NCBI GenBank assembly: GCA_965235115.1
Contig: OZ249445.1
Coordinates: forward strand, 5,704,001-5,768,000
Origin: Laetmonice hystrix
Lineage: Eukaryota
Direction: 5' to 3'
Length of the DNA stretch: 64,000 nucleotides
The notes beneath the pieces were generated by a model. The model searched no databases. It was not told the DNA's origin and worked only from the letters and a program-made list of their open reading frames with translations. Positions 14,766 through 23,435 of this stretch are shown here, piece by piece (within the stretch, counting starts at the first letter, position 1; each line of letters begins with the position of its first letter). The translations under genes were made by a program, and so were the position numbers.

Positions 14766-17282
14766 CAGCAGACCAACCAACAGCAGTCCGACTCGTGTGT
14801 CATTGTGAGTGACACAAGTCTAGAAGGTGTGTCGGTATGGGACCGACCACCATGCACAGACCTACATTCACACAATGGTACGTCCTGCATGCATGCACAC
14901 GGCGTGCGTGGAGACAGGCCGACCGCGAGGAGCGTGCACGCGCGCGTTCACAGTGTCTACCCGCCATCAGGTCATGTCCGTGCAGGACGCGTGCAGTGTC
15001 TACGTGCCAGCGTACCTCGTCTACAGACCCTACCATCTGACGGCAAACTTCCCACCGTAAGCCGGATCAGTGTAGAGGCCCGTTTTTATCAACCATATTA
15101 TAGGCTCATTGGAGTTGCACTCTAGTCAATAAAAGATATACTGAATCACAAAGTATATATATTGTTGGGGTGGGGTTCCACATGTCAATACGGGGAAATC
15201 CCAGTACCAGTGCGAGCTGGGTGTCACCATTATTAACGGCTACAGAAGGGGATTGATTCTGACTGTGTTCTAGTCTGTCTATGGGGCATTGAAATCCGGT
15301 CACACAACGTCTAAGGTTAATAAGTACGCCGCGTGATAACTCGCTATCTGGGCAGAGTCCTAATCCGGCAGAAACACTGTGATTGTCTGCGGAAAGGACT
15401 GGATGCAAGCACGGCTGACGACTGGTATCAGGAGTTGTGGAAGCTGAGGTATGGTTAGCTGGGGCCATATACCCCCAGCAGCTATGGTATTAATGCCATA
15501 TTGCATGCCGGCACTAGGTAATACTATAGGACCTAGACCTATAATAATGGGACAATCATCGAACTAAGATTGCGTGTGGAACCCTATTATAAACCTAGAT
15601 GATATTATGTTGTTGGTGATTGAGTTTGTATCCTTCAAATTCAGTCTCAAAATCACAGGCTGTTGGAGCATTCTATATGGTCGTTGATACGGAGAGGCGG
15701 GAAGGGTATCGTAAGGCTGGTTGGGGTGGCATAAAAAGGGGTGGCCCCTAACGCATAGATAATCAGAATAAAGCTTATTCCTTTATTAAAATAGCCCCCC
15801 CCCCCCCCTCCCCGCCGAGTGCGGGGCCTTGTCTGTGCTGGGGGCCTTGTCATGACGGTCGTGATGCCCGGGATAAAGTAGTATAGTGAAAGTGACGTTG
15901 TATGAGGGCAGCCAGCCTGCGGACGGCGCGCTGTACGTACGACGGCCGGCCCCTCGAGGTATATCATTGAATTAATCACGTGAAACATGTAACCTTCCTC
16001 ATCTTGATTACCTACTTTCCTGACCTAACATATCGGATGATAATTTGTGTAGGCTGCAGGGACCGTGGTATCCACCACTTCCCATGGTCTCCGTCACGCA
16101 GTCAGTCGGCGTACACGGTGATAATTGTGGCGGTATTGATAGCCCTGCCAACACGGTCCACCGAACAGTGTGGGTACAGGCGGTACCTTTCTATTATTAA
16201 TGACGGCTAGTCACGGCCCCACACCACCAGGTGGCGTCCTTACAGCCTCACCTACAGGTACCAAAACCGTACCCTGTTATTGCTGGCCCGAGGCGTCCCG
16301 TTCACACATCTATATTAATGTCCTGTTAAAGACATTATCGATCTGGTCGTTCCTTATGTTACATGTCTCTCAACCAAAGTTTGTGATTGTCAGTAACACG
16401 AGTGAACCACTTCTTCAGCACGCCTTACGTAGGCCTAATGGGTCTATAGGTGGTGAAGTTATTCTGACTTAGGGCATAAGAGTGTCAGGCACTTCAAAAC
16501 ATCTCAAGTCATGACGTTTGTTCATACTAAAGTTTGGAGTCGAACCGAAACTTCTTCGGTTTTTTCCTTCTGACAGTACGAACTCTAAACTTCTCAAAGA
16601 CGAATTCCACAACTGATAATACTTTTGATCGTCGTCAGCCTGAAAGTCTAAAGCCACAATCGACCAGACTTTGGACTAAACGAGACTTTTTTTGTGAATT
16701 CATATGCACATCGCCTCTTTAGAAATTTATGTAACACAAAAATATATCTAAAAATCCCCCCCCCCCTTTCACCACGTGACATCCATGTGCTGGATCAGCC
16801 AAACTAGTCATGCCTGCACCGAGTGACCTTTATGCAAATTAGCTCCATAATGGCGGTGGCAGCGTTCTTCAGAGATGGAGCCTGTCCCCAGCTCCCCAAC
16901 CCCTCCCCTTCAACCCTTACACCGTCAATGTACTGTCTCTGTAGGTCACATATTACAGATATTTTGAAGAAAAATTAGATTTGTAATGGAACCTCTCCCA
17001 TGACACGCGTGACAACGATTAACAATGCATCGTGGCAAACTAGAATGAATCTGATCGTGCGAGTATTTCCAGATCCAGGTCCCTACTCATTACACTCGTC
17101 ATCCCTAAATACATAGTGCTTTTTATTTGATTTATTTAGCCACCTTTAACCGGTATGAGATCGGTATATATGTAAGCAGTCCGATCTTGTCGTCATGTTC
17201 CTGTCCACACACGGATTGACTCTCGGCTCCGGTTGGTTTGTTCCAGTGGACGGACTCTCCTTACCCCATGCGTATCGCGGCC

Positions 17283-20200
17283 ATGGAGCACTACCTGCCC
17301 CACTACACCCACCAGCGCCCACGGCCCAAACACGGCACCGTGCGGCTGGCGGCTGTCTTCGTCGAGAGTGGCACGGCCCGGCTCATCTCGGAGGAAGAGG
17401 CGGTGCACTGCCCGGACAGTCCGTTCCCGGCGCCGTCAGCCCTCCGGCGGCCGAGGGCCTCCCGCCGGCTTGTCAAACACATGGAACCGCGGGGTCACAC
17501 CCGGGTCAGGCCGCGCATCTGTGAGGGGCACAACTTGAGGAGAAGTCTGCGCGGGCACTTGGTCCGCCACATGCTGGTGTACCTCACACTATTCGGGGTC
17601 CTGGTGGGCCTGGCGCTCGGCTTCGCACTCCGACCTGTCCGGCCCTCCGACAACACCCTCGTCTGGCTAGGTGAGCGTGGCAATCAATTTCTTGTAATGG
17701 TCTTGTATGTTCTTGGCAAATATCAAGGCAGAAAAATGACTGCTTTAAGATTGAGCTAAAGCTGTTGTGGGCCTATATCAAATAGTTTTATGTTAAATCC
17801 CTGAGGTCATAGCTTAGAAACAAGGCAAGGAAGGGAAAGCCCGTACTACAAGCTATAAATGCCTCACCAAATCATGTCTTGGTTTCCATTCCTGCCGCCA
17901 GGATTCCCCGGGTATCTCTTCCTACGCCTGCTCCAGATGATGATCGTCCCTCTCGTGCTCACGTCAATCATTTCCGGTAGGTTCCGTGAGTGCGTGGCGT
18001 TCATGTCGTGTCCCCGGGGCCAGTGGTTGCCACGGTGACGGTGGCCCCATGGTCTCCTATTTTTAAAGCTGTTCAATTGCTAGGGTTACCGTTGTATGTG
18101 CCCCTTTGTACATGTCTGTCTTTCATGGTAAGTTATAGAATCGTATATATCTTTCGATTTCCGTCATTGTATCTTAGCATGTGTCTCTTTTCCATGGCAA
18201 CAATATATTTCAGGGACAGCTAGTCTGGACGTGCGATCGTGCGGTAAGATTGGTCTAGTCGGCTTCATCTTCATCGTGCTCACCAACATCCTGGGCACTG
18301 CCCTCGGCCTCGTTCTGGCTCTCCTCACCACCCCCGGTACGTCTCAAACACCCCTGGTGCAGGTTTTAATCGGCCCTGGACCTGGGTCTTCAAAACGGAC
18401 GCTTATGATTGGCTGGTTTCGATCAGCCAATCAGAGGCATTCAATTTAAGCTGAAGCAAGAGCTTAGGATCCGAGAAACCGGAGCTGGAATACTAGTTCA
18501 ACGTTCACTTTCAGGCTTAACGAAGATCACCACATTTCGTAGTATTTTAAGAACAGTCCTGGCCGTTTATAAAAGGCGGTCCATCACATTTCATTTATTA
18601 ACGTTGATAAGTTATCGATAATAATAAACCATTTAAGGTTACTCCAGACCTCTTGGACAGACTAAAGCCTACTGTGCACTGTTCTTTATAACTCACACCA
18701 ACGTCTACCCTGCAGGTTACGACCTATTGGACCAATCAAGTGCCTTGAAATCACTGGACTCCAAAAAAGCACAAGATATCATAGCAGATTTTCTACGGTG
18801 AGAATGGCCAGCCTCTTCGCTCCATGCGTTTGTCTTGTCTCGTACTGTTATAACTGGATTCTGTTTCTATCATTAATTCAGACGTGAATTAACAAGCGTT
18901 GCATGCACGTTGCACTCGTCTGTCCACATTGACAACCGTCCAGTATTATGTTTAAATGTTTATTGATGTATTGATCTCACAATGCGCCTACAAATACCAT
19001 CTTGTTTTAATATTTGCAGTAACATGATTCCCGATAACATTGTTCTGGCTACAATACGACAGGTAGGCCCAGGCAGCATTCTTTCTTTTATGAACTAAAA
19101 TTCAACTGTCCAACAGTGTCCAAATATTCTAGATTTAGATCAGGGAATAAACTCAGTAGTTTGTTTGTCTCTCTTCTTCCTGTTACTCTTGCTCTCTTTC
19201 TGTTTTTTCTTCTAGAACCCTTCCCCTGTTTCCCCCTATCATTCTAATACTGAAGGTCAAAATGGTCAGACTAAAAGTTGACGCTGACCGCTGACCGCTG
19301 ACTGCTGGCCACTGATTGCTGACCACTGATTGCTGACTGCTGACCACTGATTACTAACCACATGCCGTTTCTTGCAGACCCAGACGGAGTACCTCCCTCT
19401 GGAAGCCGCCCGTTCTCTCAACACCACGGCCGGGGTAACGGTCGAGGCACCCGTTCTCCTCCGCTCTACCGTCGGCTACGTCGACTCCACCAACGTACTC
19501 GGTAAGATATCACTTTGCTAAATTCCGCTCGTTCATATACGCGTCCGTCGTGCAGATTGAAGGCTCAAGAACTTTTGAAAGTTTCTCAGGAAGTCGCAAG
19601 TTAGTTATTCTTCAACACAATAACAAATTCTTTGGGCGCTGGTTTTCACATCTCCGGCTTCAGTGAACCGAGTACAGCGTTTACATAGATCCGTCTTGCA
19701 GAACCTTTAAAGCAATCAGCGAGTCTCTCATTATAGTGACTCGAAAATACAGACATGGACTGTTCAGTTAGATAAAGCCTTAGATTACATAAATCAATGT
19801 TTACCCACAAAAATGGAGAAATCTACTGAAACTCAACATTCTAGTTGCCCGTTCTCGCCATGAAGCGAACGGCTCATTTCTGGTTGTTGACCTGGCATTA
19901 ACTTTAAGAGCCAATGAAATTAATTGGTTCACCGTCCGATGAGTTTAATTGGCTGTTCAAGTCAATGCCAGGACAACGATTACTTACCATTTACTGTTAT
20001 GTACTGATCAGCGGGGATTCCCATTGTGTATGACGAAAATGACGCGCGTTCCAGGTCTGGCGTGCTTCGCTCTCCTCGTCGGCATAGCAACAAGTTTGAG
20101 CGGTGACGCGGGCAAACCATTCCTGACAGGAATACGATCTCTGACAGAAATCATCTTCATCATCCTCCGATGGATTCTATGGTAGGTCAACTACATTTCT

Positions 20201-21755
20201 GTCAGAGTAGGCCTTAGGGCTACGGAAACCATTGGAATGATAAAATAAAACAACAAAGGGGCAATCAGCCCTGTTTTATTTGGGCTTACTCATTTTCCGT
20301 CTTATGGTAGATGAGCTGTCTCGAATGTCATACAAGAACTTTGCTGAGAGAGATCTTCCATGTAAAGTTGCCAGTTATGGCGCCATAGTTGTTGTGATTT
20401 CATAAACTGGCGTCTATTCGTGTGACAGGAGTGCGCCGGTCGGTATCACGAGTCTGATCGCAGCGTCCGTGGCGTCCGTCTCCCAGGTGGAGCCACCGTT
20501 CATCAAGTTGGTCATGTTGGTCGTCACGGTGGTAACCGGGCTTGTCCTCCAGCAGGTGCTCGTCTACCCCATCCTTTACGCCGCCTTCACCAGGAGGAAC
20601 CCACTGACCTTCTACCGGGACCTGGCCAGCGCCTGGGGCGTCTCCTGGGCCTCCGCATCCACGTGAGTCACATGACGAAGTTGTTCAAATTTAAAACCTT
20701 GTCGCTGACAACGCATAATGTCAGGAGAGTAGGAAACCACCATGGATTATGTTCTAGAACGAGGATTTAAACAAGTAGACTATAGACCCTACTATATAAC
20801 TAAATACCTGGATATATTATGGCAGCCCTATAGACCTACAGAAGATAACTGTCCTACAAATGTAATTTTAAGAAAGAGAATTTTCCTTCTCTTTACTTTT
20901 CTCTAGAGCCATCGCCATGCCGGAGCTATACAAGGGTCTGGACGCGCAGACCGTCGACAAGAGGGTGTCAAGATTCCTGGTCCCGCTAGGTGTCACCACC
21001 AGCGCCGACGGCAGCGTCTGTTTCCTTGCGGCCGGCGTTCTCTTTCTGGCTCAGATGGCCGGCAGGCAGCTCGACTTCGGTCAGGTCCTCACTGTCGGGT
21101 CAGTTACACTTCCGGGATCTTTGCGTTTCATGGCCAACAACGTGGCAAGCAACACTGGCATTGACCCACCCACTCACTCTCGTATTCACGTGTTTTAGGG
21201 TTGTGACGTCACTCTCTGGACTCGCTCTCCCGGCGGTACCTGGGGCGTCACTCGTCATGCTTGTCGTCATTGTGACGTCACTCAGTATCCCAGCCAGAAA
21301 TATCGGTCTTCTCTTCATTGTGGAATGGTTCCTGTAGGTAGATTTCTCTATACAACGACCTTTAAGCGAGTTAGCAGTTGCTAAAATCACTTGCAAAAGC
21401 CTATGTCCAATTTAATTAAGCAGAGTAGAAGTCGAGACCCTCTGCTTGCATTCTCACTAACCCTCACCCCCAGTAGGCCTATCCGTCAAGGCGTTTCACT
21501 GGGCCGTAGTCGTGGTCGTGTCATAGGCTGACTAATGTTTTTCATGATGAACTCGTTCATGGCGCATGTTTCAGCGACAAGATGCGGACGACGAGTAACG
21601 TAATGAGCGTGGCGGTCGGGGCGGCTGTGACGTCACACCTCTGTCAGGAACAGTTACAGAGACTGGACGCCCGCGAGATCGAGGAAATCGAGTCGACGCC
21701 AGACACGGGCACAACTGACCTGACCAGTATGACGGACGTCAAGGAGCTGGCCTGA
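17283..21755 (+). CDS. Divergent SLC1 (EAAT/ASCT, dicarboxylate/amino acid:cation symporter) family transporter, ~567 aa
   Basis: Exons 17283(gccATGg; alternative in-frame ATG 17268; acceptor just before 17247)-17670, 17902-17976, 18214-18336, 18716-18797, 19020-19062, 19378-19501, 20055-20181, 20429-20662, 20907-21098, 21199-21333, 21575-21755 (TGA); 1704 nt, no internal stop. Family motifs: FPGYLFLRLLQMMIVPL, ASLDVRSCGKIG, DFLRNMIPDNIV, VDKRVSRFLVPLG, FLAQ, EWFLDKMRTTSNV. Start codon uncertain. Confidence 0.92.
19283..19359. repeat. 7-bp tandem array (11 units) of branch-point-like motifs upstream of an SLC1 acceptor
   Basis: gctgacc/gctgact/actgatt units ending in actaacc, 18 nt before the acceptor at 19377. 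Confidence 0.85.
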
Positions 21756-23435
21756 CCCCGCCCCACAACCAACCGTTGATGTCGTCACGGGGTCAATGGG
21801 TCAGCAGGAGCCCGTGTTCTCAAACACCCTCAGGTTACCAGCCAATAGATCTAGGCCTATCTAGGCCTATCTAGGCCTGCAGGTGCACAAACATTTTCTT
21901 GGGGTAGGCCTACTAGGACTATATAAGGGAATATTACCCTCCCACTATACACTCTGTCAACTAATTAATGTCTTGGCTGACCTTCAAAAACGCCAATCAC
22001 GCACATCGTTTATTCCTGCCGTGACCTTGAAGTTGATGTGCCCAGATATCTACTTGAACCCCAAAACAGTAGTCCTATAGGCCTAACGTTCAAAAGTTCA
22101 TGAGGTTTCCAGGATGTTGAGATAGAACCACAAAACACGGATAGGCTACAATAGGCCTAGGGGCCTATAGGCCTAGGCTCTACCTGCATGACGTATCAAG
22201 GCCTAGGGCCTCGGCTTAGGCCTACATAGCTCCTCTATCTTGTATCCCACTGACACGATGTGCTCAATGAATCAAGAATATACCGAGATGAAGGGTCTAG
22301 GGTCTGGATCAATGACCACACTCAGATCACGTGCTCAGTTGGTCCAAGACAAAGAACCTAGCGAAATACAAGGCCCACCTAGGCCTACGTGTTTAAATTA
22401 TGAAACTATACAACCTGACACTCGATGTACTCGATGCTTCAAATGCCTATGATGCGTCAAAAAAATCTTGAACAAGGAAAGCGTATCCACAATGACCCAA
22501 CGTTCTCAACGTAGAACCAGATGTATTTGTAAAATACATCTGGTTTGGATACATAGAAACATACATGTACTTGATGCAAGGGGCCATGGCTCTAGCATTA
22601 AGGTACCAGTAGGCCTGCTTCATTTGAAGAGTGTAATCAGAATTTTTGAGTGGACAAAGTAAAGGCCCTTTTTTAGGAACGGCTGGAACGGAGAATAATT
22701 TTTTATACTTTAAGTTTACAAAGTAAGTAGAAGACACAAAAGTGTTCCCAGGGAATTTCTACAACCTCATATCATCGTTGTTGCAGCTATTAAGATATGC
22801 ATGCTATAGAAATGTAACAATTTATTGGAAACAATAATAATTATGGCAGGTATGAAAATGGTGCTGTTAAAAAACAAAACAAAAAATCATGCCTTTAGGG
22901 TCCGTATATGCAAAATACTTGTTTGGGCCTTAGCGGGTGTTACACCGTATATAATGTAACTTGATTCGTCCACCAATAATAATATTATCGGTTAAGGGCC
23001 TAGGATAGTGTAAATATGACGAGAATCAGCCTAGAATTGTACGTCATTATAGTCGATTAATCTGTGGATGAGCCAGTTGCTACAGTCAACATCATACCAG
23101 ATAAACTGTGGGTTTCTGCCGAGTAGATGGGGTACCAGATTATGCCAATTCATGGAGTCCAAACGGACTGCTCTCCTGTCCGTACGGGGGTAGGCCTGTC
23201 CGTCAGCATACCAGCAACATGTTATTGCTTACAGCCTGCACTGGTCACACCATATTAGCAACATGTTATTGCTTACAGCCTGCATGCACGCCTCGGTGTA
23301 ATTGTACTTAATGAGCGGTTATTTCGTGTAATAATGTGCGACTAATTATGATAAGGCTTAATTAGCATAGGTTGGATATCGCGGGGTCTACAGAGATGTT
23401 GACAGTACTCACAAGATCTCAGGACGACCCGATGT

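Follow-up and report, generated by a model that had tools for sequence, protein, structure and literature searches.

Transporters of the SLC1 family are the textbook case of tight ion coupling, in which 3 Na+ and 1 H+ move in with the substrate and 1 K+ moves out, and the residues that make this coupling obligatory are still debated from point mutants and reconstructed prokaryotic ancestors. Here we describe an SLC1 gene of Laetmonice hystrix (Eukaryota) that lies on the + strand of a 64,000-nucleotide stretch of the NCBI GenBank assembly GCA_965235115.1 (contig OZ249445.1, positions 5,704,001 to 5,768,000 of the forward strand); this whole stretch is called the window, and the gene occupies positions 17268/17283-21755 of it. 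The gene keeps the residues that bind acidic amino acids in the excitatory amino acid transporters (EAATs), has lost most of those that bind or couple the ions, and belongs to a large divergent invertebrate clade in which the same positions are lost or drifting. On balance this pattern suggests a carrier whose cycle is no longer driven by the ions of its relatives.

Expectations for the individual residues come from mutants and structures. When the Na1/K1 aspartate of EAAC1 is neutralised (D454A), K+ binding and relocation are abolished and homoexchange persists; the mutant N365A has no activity (PMC7537348). K+ coupling is lost in E374Q, and the Na2 site and the high-affinity pocket form only once M367 has swung inwards (PMC10160106). 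On the substrate side, specificity for alpha-amino acids comes from D444 and T448, and the EAAT-like orthologs aligned in the same source as these two residues share R447 and N451 (PMC3737229).

Natural and reconstructed departures from the canonical scheme have been described as well. ASCT1 and ASCT2 (SLC1A4/5), which are Na+-dependent obligatory exchangers of neutral amino acids, lack the proton/K+ glutamate, as does the window gene, so that K+-independent exchange is a natural functional analogy. However, the sampled ASCT rows keep NMDG and the Na1 aspartate and carry Cys in place of the pocket arginine (ASCT2 rows read NMDG, ..DRTCT.. and ..GD), which is the reverse of the window gene. In Culex, the duplicated SLC1 protein CuqDCT acquired a new transport mode, as a dicarboxylate transporter, through a few pocket substitutions (PMC3737229); there the substrate residues changed (D444N, T448A), whereas in the window gene these are intact and the coupling residues have changed. 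How ion coupling diversified among homologous transporters is the subject of PMC12668577, according to which AncInt, a reconstructed Na+-independent intermediate of prokaryotic glutamate transporters, binds aspartate with high affinity without Na+, so tight binding of this kind is possible in the fold. As described there, the Na1 and Na3 residues of AncInt are configured as in Na+-bound GltPh and allosteric mutations restore coupling, whereas the window gene encodes a natural animal protein in which the site residues themselves are replaced.

The window gene was rebuilt from the raw sequence at previously proposed exon coordinates, and residue numbers without another scheme refer to the resulting protein of 572 amino acids. 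By HMMER, its single exons align without gaps to the solved chains of EAAT1, EAAT2, EAAT3, ASCT1/2, GltTk and GltPh. Against the EAAT1 and EAAT2 chains the transport-domain core runs gap-free through transmembrane helix (TM) 7, helical hairpin (HP) 2 and TM8, and the motifs that an earlier reading of the sequence alone had picked out in these elements were thereby confirmed. In TM7, PLGVTTSADGSVCFLA aligns to PVGATINMDGTALYEA of EAAT1, with NMDG turned into SADG and YE into FL (5llu/7awq and others, E = 1e-10). In HP2, SGLALPAVPGASLV aligns to ASIGAAGIPQAGLV of EAAT1/EAAT2 and the tip is rewritten, and in TM8, DKMRTTSNVMSV aligns to DRFRTMVNVLGD of the same chains, with D..RT..N kept and the Na1 aspartate replaced by valine.

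In GltPh numbering, the window gene thus has N310>S, M311>A, T314>S, Y317>F and D405>V, keeps D312, and carries Leu for the proton glutamate of the EAATs; at the TM3 positions of the Na3 site, Y89 is Ile, T92 is kept and S93 is Asn. The substrate residues D394, R397, T398 and N401 (EAAT3 D444, R447, T448 and N451) are all present, both here and in the ortholog described below. The sequence-only reading had tabulated N310>S, M311>A, D405>V, S93>N, the loss of the proton glutamate and the four kept substrate residues correctly. Two of its entries need qualification: D312 is indeed Asp in this gene, but the residue is not conserved, since the ortholog reads SASG, and the substitution Y89>I, though present, says little about Na3 because in the GltPh and GltTk structures Y89 contributes a backbone carbonyl to that site.

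The gene accordingly departs from the canonical EAATs at N-M-D (S-A-D), at the Na1/K1 aspartate (Val) and at E374 (Leu), and from the ASCT type in that the arginine is kept and NMD and the Na1 aspartate are lost. With mammalian EAAT1-3 (SLC1A3/2/1; 5llu, 7xr4, 6x2l) it shares the Pfam family, a collinear architecture, the four acidic amino-acid residues and the aromatic residue before the Glu position. In contrast, NMD has become SAD, E374 Leu, D455 Val and S93/T Asn, the HP2 tip reads A-x-P-x-V-P-x-x-S where EAATs have G-x-x-G-I-P-x-x-G, overall identity is about 30-33%, and the gene falls outside the canonical clade.

Two word-seeded searches that set out from the closest full-length relatives yielded hundreds of proteins. 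They belong to molluscs, nemerteans, Owenia and one hemichordate and are labelled 'excitatory amino acid transporter-like' or 'sodium-dependent ... glt-6'. The best match by bit score comes from the annelid Owenia, and several mollusc proteins are slightly more identical. In a maximum-likelihood tree of 72 rows (LG+C20+F+G4), the window gene, its paralogues and these mollusc, annelid, nemertean and hemichordate proteins fall in a divergent clade of 50 rows supported by ultrafast bootstrap (UFBoot) 99 and Shimodaira-Hasegawa-like approximate likelihood ratio test (SH-aLRT) 100, on a branch of length 0.59; a quick tree likewise places the window gene there. Canonical EAATs and ASCTs lie outside this clade, the ASCT proteins as a separate branch. 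Within the clade, four paralogues from the same genome join the window gene (82/92), which has a terminal branch of 1.38. An origin of the clade before the protostome-deuterostome split can be proposed only tentatively, because the hemichordate row has a long branch. The sister group of the clade, with moderate support (92/73), consists of insect proteins that keep NMDG and Asp405 but carry Leu in place of the proton glutamate. These lepidopteran and aphid 'excitatory amino acid transporters' (P0219-P0229, P0232) have an HP2 of the S-A-S-V-P-S-A-A type and may represent an intermediate state.

We compared residues between 146 divergent and 53 canonical proteins, the latter set being defined by NMDG, so that its 100% N-M-D holds by construction. 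Among the divergent proteins, M311 is never Met (Ala 43%, Arg 39%, Cys 9%; canonical Met 100%, by construction) and D405 is never Asp (His 62%; canonical Asp 96%), the Glu374 position is Ile in 84% and the proton glutamate in about 1%, and Asn at N310 and Asp at D312 are found in only 50% and 45%. The pocket stands in contrast to these drifting positions: D394 and R397 are each kept in 99%, Thr or Ser at T398 in 91% and N401 in 84%, with G313 kept in 96% and Ser at the T314 position in 95%. At S93, 87% of the 146 have Asn, where canonical proteins have Thr or Ser. Six positions split the two groups cleanly, namely Asn at S93, Ser at T314, Leu470, Ala477, Pro479 and Glu (Glu510) at D390; the window gene carries five of the six signatures, with Val for Leu at 470, and all three losses (Met311, Asp405, Glu374).

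Across phyla, the slow-evolving core of the clade reads Y-I-x-x-T-N, CVTLNADGSALFI, ALPSVPSSS and EWFLDRIRTTSN..SH, and 32 of the 146 members combine N-A-D with His at the D405 position. The lophotrochozoan EAAT-like proteins of Owenia fusiformis (P0199), Pecten (P0274), Crassostrea (P0283) and Tubulanus (P0270) are 41-44% identical to the window protein and share with it Asn184, Ser440, Ala477, Pro479 and Glu510 together with the loss of Met311, Asp405 and Glu374. They differ in that their core is N-A-D-G-S with His at D405, whereas the orthogroup of the window gene has S-A-D/S-G-S (Asp or Ser in third place) with Val or Thr at D405, a far longer N-terminus and faster evolution. Judged from the sequences compared, the combination of S-A-D with Val is a derived one, unique in the sample. 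No description of the divergent subclade or of a characterised member was found in the literature searched, which is not proof of absence, and in a metazoan survey of 2026 every SLC1 homologue counts as an EAAT-like transporter for clearance. The earlier reading had treated the gene as a singular oddity and had allowed that it might belong to an already characterised clade. The first view has to be given up, as about eleven similar loci exist in this genome and a large clade has the same losses; of the second, it holds that a clade with these substitutions exists, but no functional characterisation of it was found in that literature.

A complete ortholog is present in another species on a 1.4-Mb contig (L048) and on a second haplotig (L049). 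Its 11 exons correspond to those of the window gene, every intron is GT-AG, and the encoded protein of 575 amino acids is 70.9% identical to the window protein. Its motifs read FIIFTN, SASGS..FM, LALPAVPGAS and DKLRTTSNVLGT, so that Ser stands at D312, Thr at D405 and Met at the position of the proton glutamate, with the substrate residues unchanged; the HP2 tip run LALPAVPGAS is identical in both proteins, and the two residues before it differ (SG versus AA). By the Nei-Gojobori method, the nonsynonymous and synonymous distances (dN and dS) between the two genes are 0.235 and 1.66, giving a ratio (omega) of about 0.14, which is approximate as dS is saturated. By part, omega is 0.22 in the N-terminal extension, 0.13 in the membrane core and 0.06 in the C-tail. 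An exon-9 search of 1.84 billion representatives also retrieved a 61-amino-acid open reading frame (ORF) of that exon from a related species (P0001), which is 93% identical and keeps SADG and CFLA, and the next matches are at most 51% identical.

Polymorphism within the species was taken from three DNA runs of one sample, whose contigs pass through the introns; counts of single-nucleotide polymorphisms (SNPs) and indels are among those listed, with 5 further SNPs and 1 further indel beyond the list. Eleven of the 12 exonic SNPs are synonymous, and the single nonsynonymous one is T381A (in the 567-amino-acid numbering first proposed). As 73.5% of the possible single-base changes are nonsynonymous, this 11:1 split has P = 4e-6 under neutrality and corresponds to a ratio of nonsynonymous to synonymous polymorphism (pN/pS) of about 0.03. 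All 12 indels are intronic (P = 0.004). These data show the window gene to be genuine and intact and to encode a membrane protein of the SLC1/EAAT fold that purifying selection maintains. A decaying paralogue with dN/dS near 1, which the sequence-only reading had allowed for, does not agree with these values.

The termini of the protein are also conserved. Before TM1 lies an extension of 101 amino acids, the longest among 188 homologues (median 31-35, maximum 87), which contains 20 Lys+Arg, 10 His and 8 Asp+Glu and is specific to the orthogroup of the window gene. The basic extension of about 95 residues that had been noted earlier is real, and it has invariant blocks across four species, for example VRLAAVFVESGTARLISEEEA and RASRRLVKH. 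No Pfam domain was found in it. In an AlphaFold model of exon 1 with four orthologues, the mean predicted local distance difference test score (pLDDT) is 53.7, the extension is of low confidence and the TM1 helix (residues 87-121) is the only confident part, so that the extension is probably a tail without fixed structure in which short motifs are conserved. The C-terminal tail, ..DAREIEEIESTPDTGTTDLT..MTDVKELA, is nearly unchanged in the ortholog.

Because the D/R/T/N pocket is under near-absolute constraint while the cation ligands are replaced or drifting, the most likely reading, somewhat more probable than not, is that the window gene encodes a carrier or exchanger of acidic amino acids that has ceased to be powered by Na+, H+ and K+. 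Conclusions on coupling rest here on sequence and on the mutagenesis of other family members. Such a protein would be an elevator-type carrier that still binds aspartate, glutamate or a close acidic analogue, and its binding and translocation would no longer be driven by the entry of 3 Na+ and 1 H+ and the exit of 1 K+. At Na1 the carboxylate is gone (Val in the window gene, Thr in the ortholog); at Na3 Asn310 has become Ser, and in the ortholog Asp312 is lost too. The methionine that links Na2 to the substrate is Ala, and the glutamate needed for H+/K+ coupling is Leu (Met in the ortholog). Transport would be expected to be equilibrative, by facilitated diffusion or obligatory exchange, rather than concentrative, and the conserved N-terminal extension, probably disordered, and the C-tail would most likely carry sorting or regulatory motifs. 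The earlier suggestion of altered or lost coupling with a kept pocket is strengthened by the clade-wide residue pattern and still draws on sequence.

Several points weigh against a carrier freed from its ions. One cation could still find oxygen ligands in Thr92, in the Asn at S93 and in Ser310 and Asp312, and the AncInt study is said to have concluded that site residues alone predict coupling poorly. No transport, binding or localisation data for any clade member were found in the literature searched, and among the 1.84 billion representatives the orthogroup has no full-length ORF, only exon-sized genomic ones. Another reading, which we hold to be unlikely, is a protein that is still a concentrative, cation-coupled symporter of reduced or remodelled stoichiometry, using for example one Na+ at a rebuilt Na3 site (Thr183, Asn184, Ser436, Asp438) or H+ elsewhere. 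It would fit the kept T92, the oxygen-bearing Asn that 87% of the clade carry at S93, the presence of Asp438 (D312) in the window species and the closest related species, and the slow-evolving N-A-D core with His at D405 (32/146), as this histidine could bind a proton. However, the ortholog is equally constrained even though its D312 position is Ser and its D405 position Thr, and the orthogroup lacks Met311, any acidic or His residue at 405 and also Asn310, the counterpart of which renders EAAC1 inactive when mutated (N365A; PMC7537348).

That the protein serves mainly as a substrate-gated anion conductance, like EAAT4/5, or as an amino-acid sensor (transceptor) signalling through its long cytosolic N-terminus appears less probable still. 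Such a role would fit a conserved substrate pocket beside dismantled coupling sites, the 101-residue extension with its invariant blocks, which has no parallel in the family, and the very strong constraint on the C-tail (omega 0.06); in yeast, Ssy1 and Snf3/Rgt2 are sensors derived from transporters that have such extensions. Yet the extension is confined to this orthogroup, whereas the loss of the ion sites is clade-wide; it contains no Pfam signalling domain that we could find and models as disordered, and anion gating in EAATs requires elevator intermediates with bound Na+. A decaying or non-functional paralogue left from the family expansion is scarcely credible: the long terminal branch (1.38) and the missing full-length ORF would agree with it, but in two species and on two haplotigs the frame is open and every splice site is preserved, and we rejected this reading as effectively refuted by pN/pS (about 0.03), dN/dS (about 0.14) and the confinement of the listed indels to introns. 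For the orthogroup itself, a doubtful further suggestion, which we would not rate highly, is that the extension and C-tail form a regulatory or signalling module of an amino-acid sensor (transceptor) or of a regulated pathway that releases acidic amino-acid osmolytes or transmitters independently of ions. If so, marine lophotrochozoans would more broadly possess a large set of SLC1 carriers that need no Na+, a way of transport that has not been described for SLC1 proteins of animals. A link to the release of amino-acid osmolytes in marine osmoconformers is speculation.

If an equilibrative, ion-independent carrier is correct, the label 'sodium-dependent excitatory amino acid transporter' would probably be wrong for the genes of the clade. 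Such errors matter where the capacity for glutamate clearance and amino-acid uptake is deduced from mollusc and annelid genomes. The interest attaches to the clade more than to the single gene: it is a natural, selectively maintained animal group of more than 100 sampled members in which the pocket is near invariant and all three NMD positions and the Na1 aspartate drift, and it would serve as a natural experiment on how transporters of the elevator type work once their ions are gone.

The structure of the window gene agrees with the 11 phase-consistent, stop-free exons first proposed, as the rebuilt frame is continuous with 0 stops and GT-AG at every intron. The start at 17283 given in that proposal is to be revised: the first in-frame ATG stands at 17268, 15 nucleotides upstream, the frame is open up to it, and the protein then begins MRIAAMEHY. 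Because all three orthologous exon-1 ORFs from other species (P0350, P0351 and P0352) begin M-R-V-x-x-M-E-H-Y, translation probably starts at 17268 and the predicted protein has 572 rather than 567 amino acids. The exons are as follows, with dN/dS against the ortholog where given.

17268..17670, + strand: exon 1, candidate start, basic N-terminal extension and TM1; GT donor and frame; dN/dS 0.22
17902..17976, + strand: exon 2, TM2 with FPG..PLV.TS; AG/GT, phase 1; Pfam SDF positions 29-51
18214..18336, + strand: exon 3, TM3; codons 18264-18287 read FIFIVLTN
18716..18797, + strand: exon 4; AG/GT, phase-consistent; two synonymous SNPs
19020..19062, + strand: exon 5, RNMIPDNIV motif; AG/GT; same exon in paralogues and ortholog
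19378..19501, + strand: exon 6, extracellular TM4 loop with NTT glycosylation sequon; AG/GT; five synonymous SNPs; dN/dS 0.26
20055..20181, + strand: exon 7, TM5; AG/GT; Pfam SDF positions 140-178
20429..20662, + strand: exon 8, TM6 and HP1a, ending ..WASAS; Pfam SDF 35.6 bits; one synonymous SNP and the only nonsynonymous one
20907..21098, + strand: exon 9, HP1b and TM7; codons 21001-21009 read S-A-D (for N-M-D); Pfam SDF 40.3 bits
21022-21027, + strand: proton/K+ Glu site within exon 9, F-L in place of Y-E
21199..21333, + strand: exon 10, HP2 and the start of TM8; codons 21215-21250 read SGLALPAVPGAS (for the Gly-rich SIGAAGIPQAG tip); Pfam SDF positions 322-364
21575..21755, + strand: exon 11, TM8 and C-terminal tail, stop at 21753-21755; codons 21576-21611 read DKMRTTSNVMSV, with Val at 21609-21611 (D405)

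Pfam SDF (PF00375) matches exons 2, 7, 8, 9 and 10 collinearly over profile positions 29-364, and exons 8 and 9 each exceed the curated cut-off of 27.9 bits alone (35.6 and 40.3 bits). Exon 6 is the fastest-evolving part of the gene (dN/dS 0.26). No duplicated or mutually exclusive exons were found within the window gene, and the neighbouring ORFs between 9 and 32 kb of the window include nothing functionally linked to it.

A six-frame Pfam scan of the whole 627-Mb assembly, in which the TM3, TM7, HP2 and TM8 exons were read at the matches, recovered the window locus (L018/L028) and located SLC1 exons at a dozen places. The window gene is one of about eleven similar divergent loci in the genome, and the scan gave the following loci.

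C2:35.08 Mb, C2:48.32 Mb and C6:22.03 Mb: three canonical EAAT genes (YY..TT, NMDGTALYE, ..GD)
C11:24.30 Mb (L039): one odd locus that keeps NMDG
C19:11.63-11.64 Mb: two divergent loci of the window gene's type
C19:23.93-24.02 Mb: two or three divergent loci of this type
C6:22.87 Mb: one divergent locus of this type
C7:10.84-10.88 Mb: a five-copy tandem array of divergent loci of this type

The array on C7 (L036, L037 and three more) reads ALMTNTAAGG in TM7, SIGAMAGGS in HP2 and still DRIRGTSN in TM8, and its genes form the longest branch in the tree. At one C19 paralogue (L033, L034), exons 2-9 lie at 23.926-23.934 Mb, whereas the HP2 and TM8 exons do not follow until about 20 kb beyond (23.955 Mb). 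The gene could be split or carry a large insertion, or the distant exons could be a separate fragment. The locus on C11 keeps the Na1 aspartate along with NMDG, has a rewritten HP2 (..GAPPADGG..) and Ala at the proton-Glu position, and its D394/R397 stretch is unaligned; it is a different kind of oddity from the window gene.

Repeats occur in and around the gene. In intron 6, at 19664-20125 of the window, the contig depth in the three DNA runs rises from about 60 to 3,000-66,000, with many loose ends and short skips, which indicates an interspersed repeat of very high copy number. In the ortholog, intron 6 (L047:15017-15622, the same in L048) repeats the 3' end of exon 6 (..LLTPVLSYVESTNIMG) in tandem at least 5 more times shortly after the genuine exon, whereas the window gene has no such copies. 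Short tandem arrays of GCTGACC/GCTGATT-type units lie in intron 5 (19255-19350), with a 49-base slip-back in one run, and repeated palindromic units, TCTAGGCCTA/AGGCCTAGG, lie downstream of the stop codon in the 3' flank (21848-21880 and 22140-22235).

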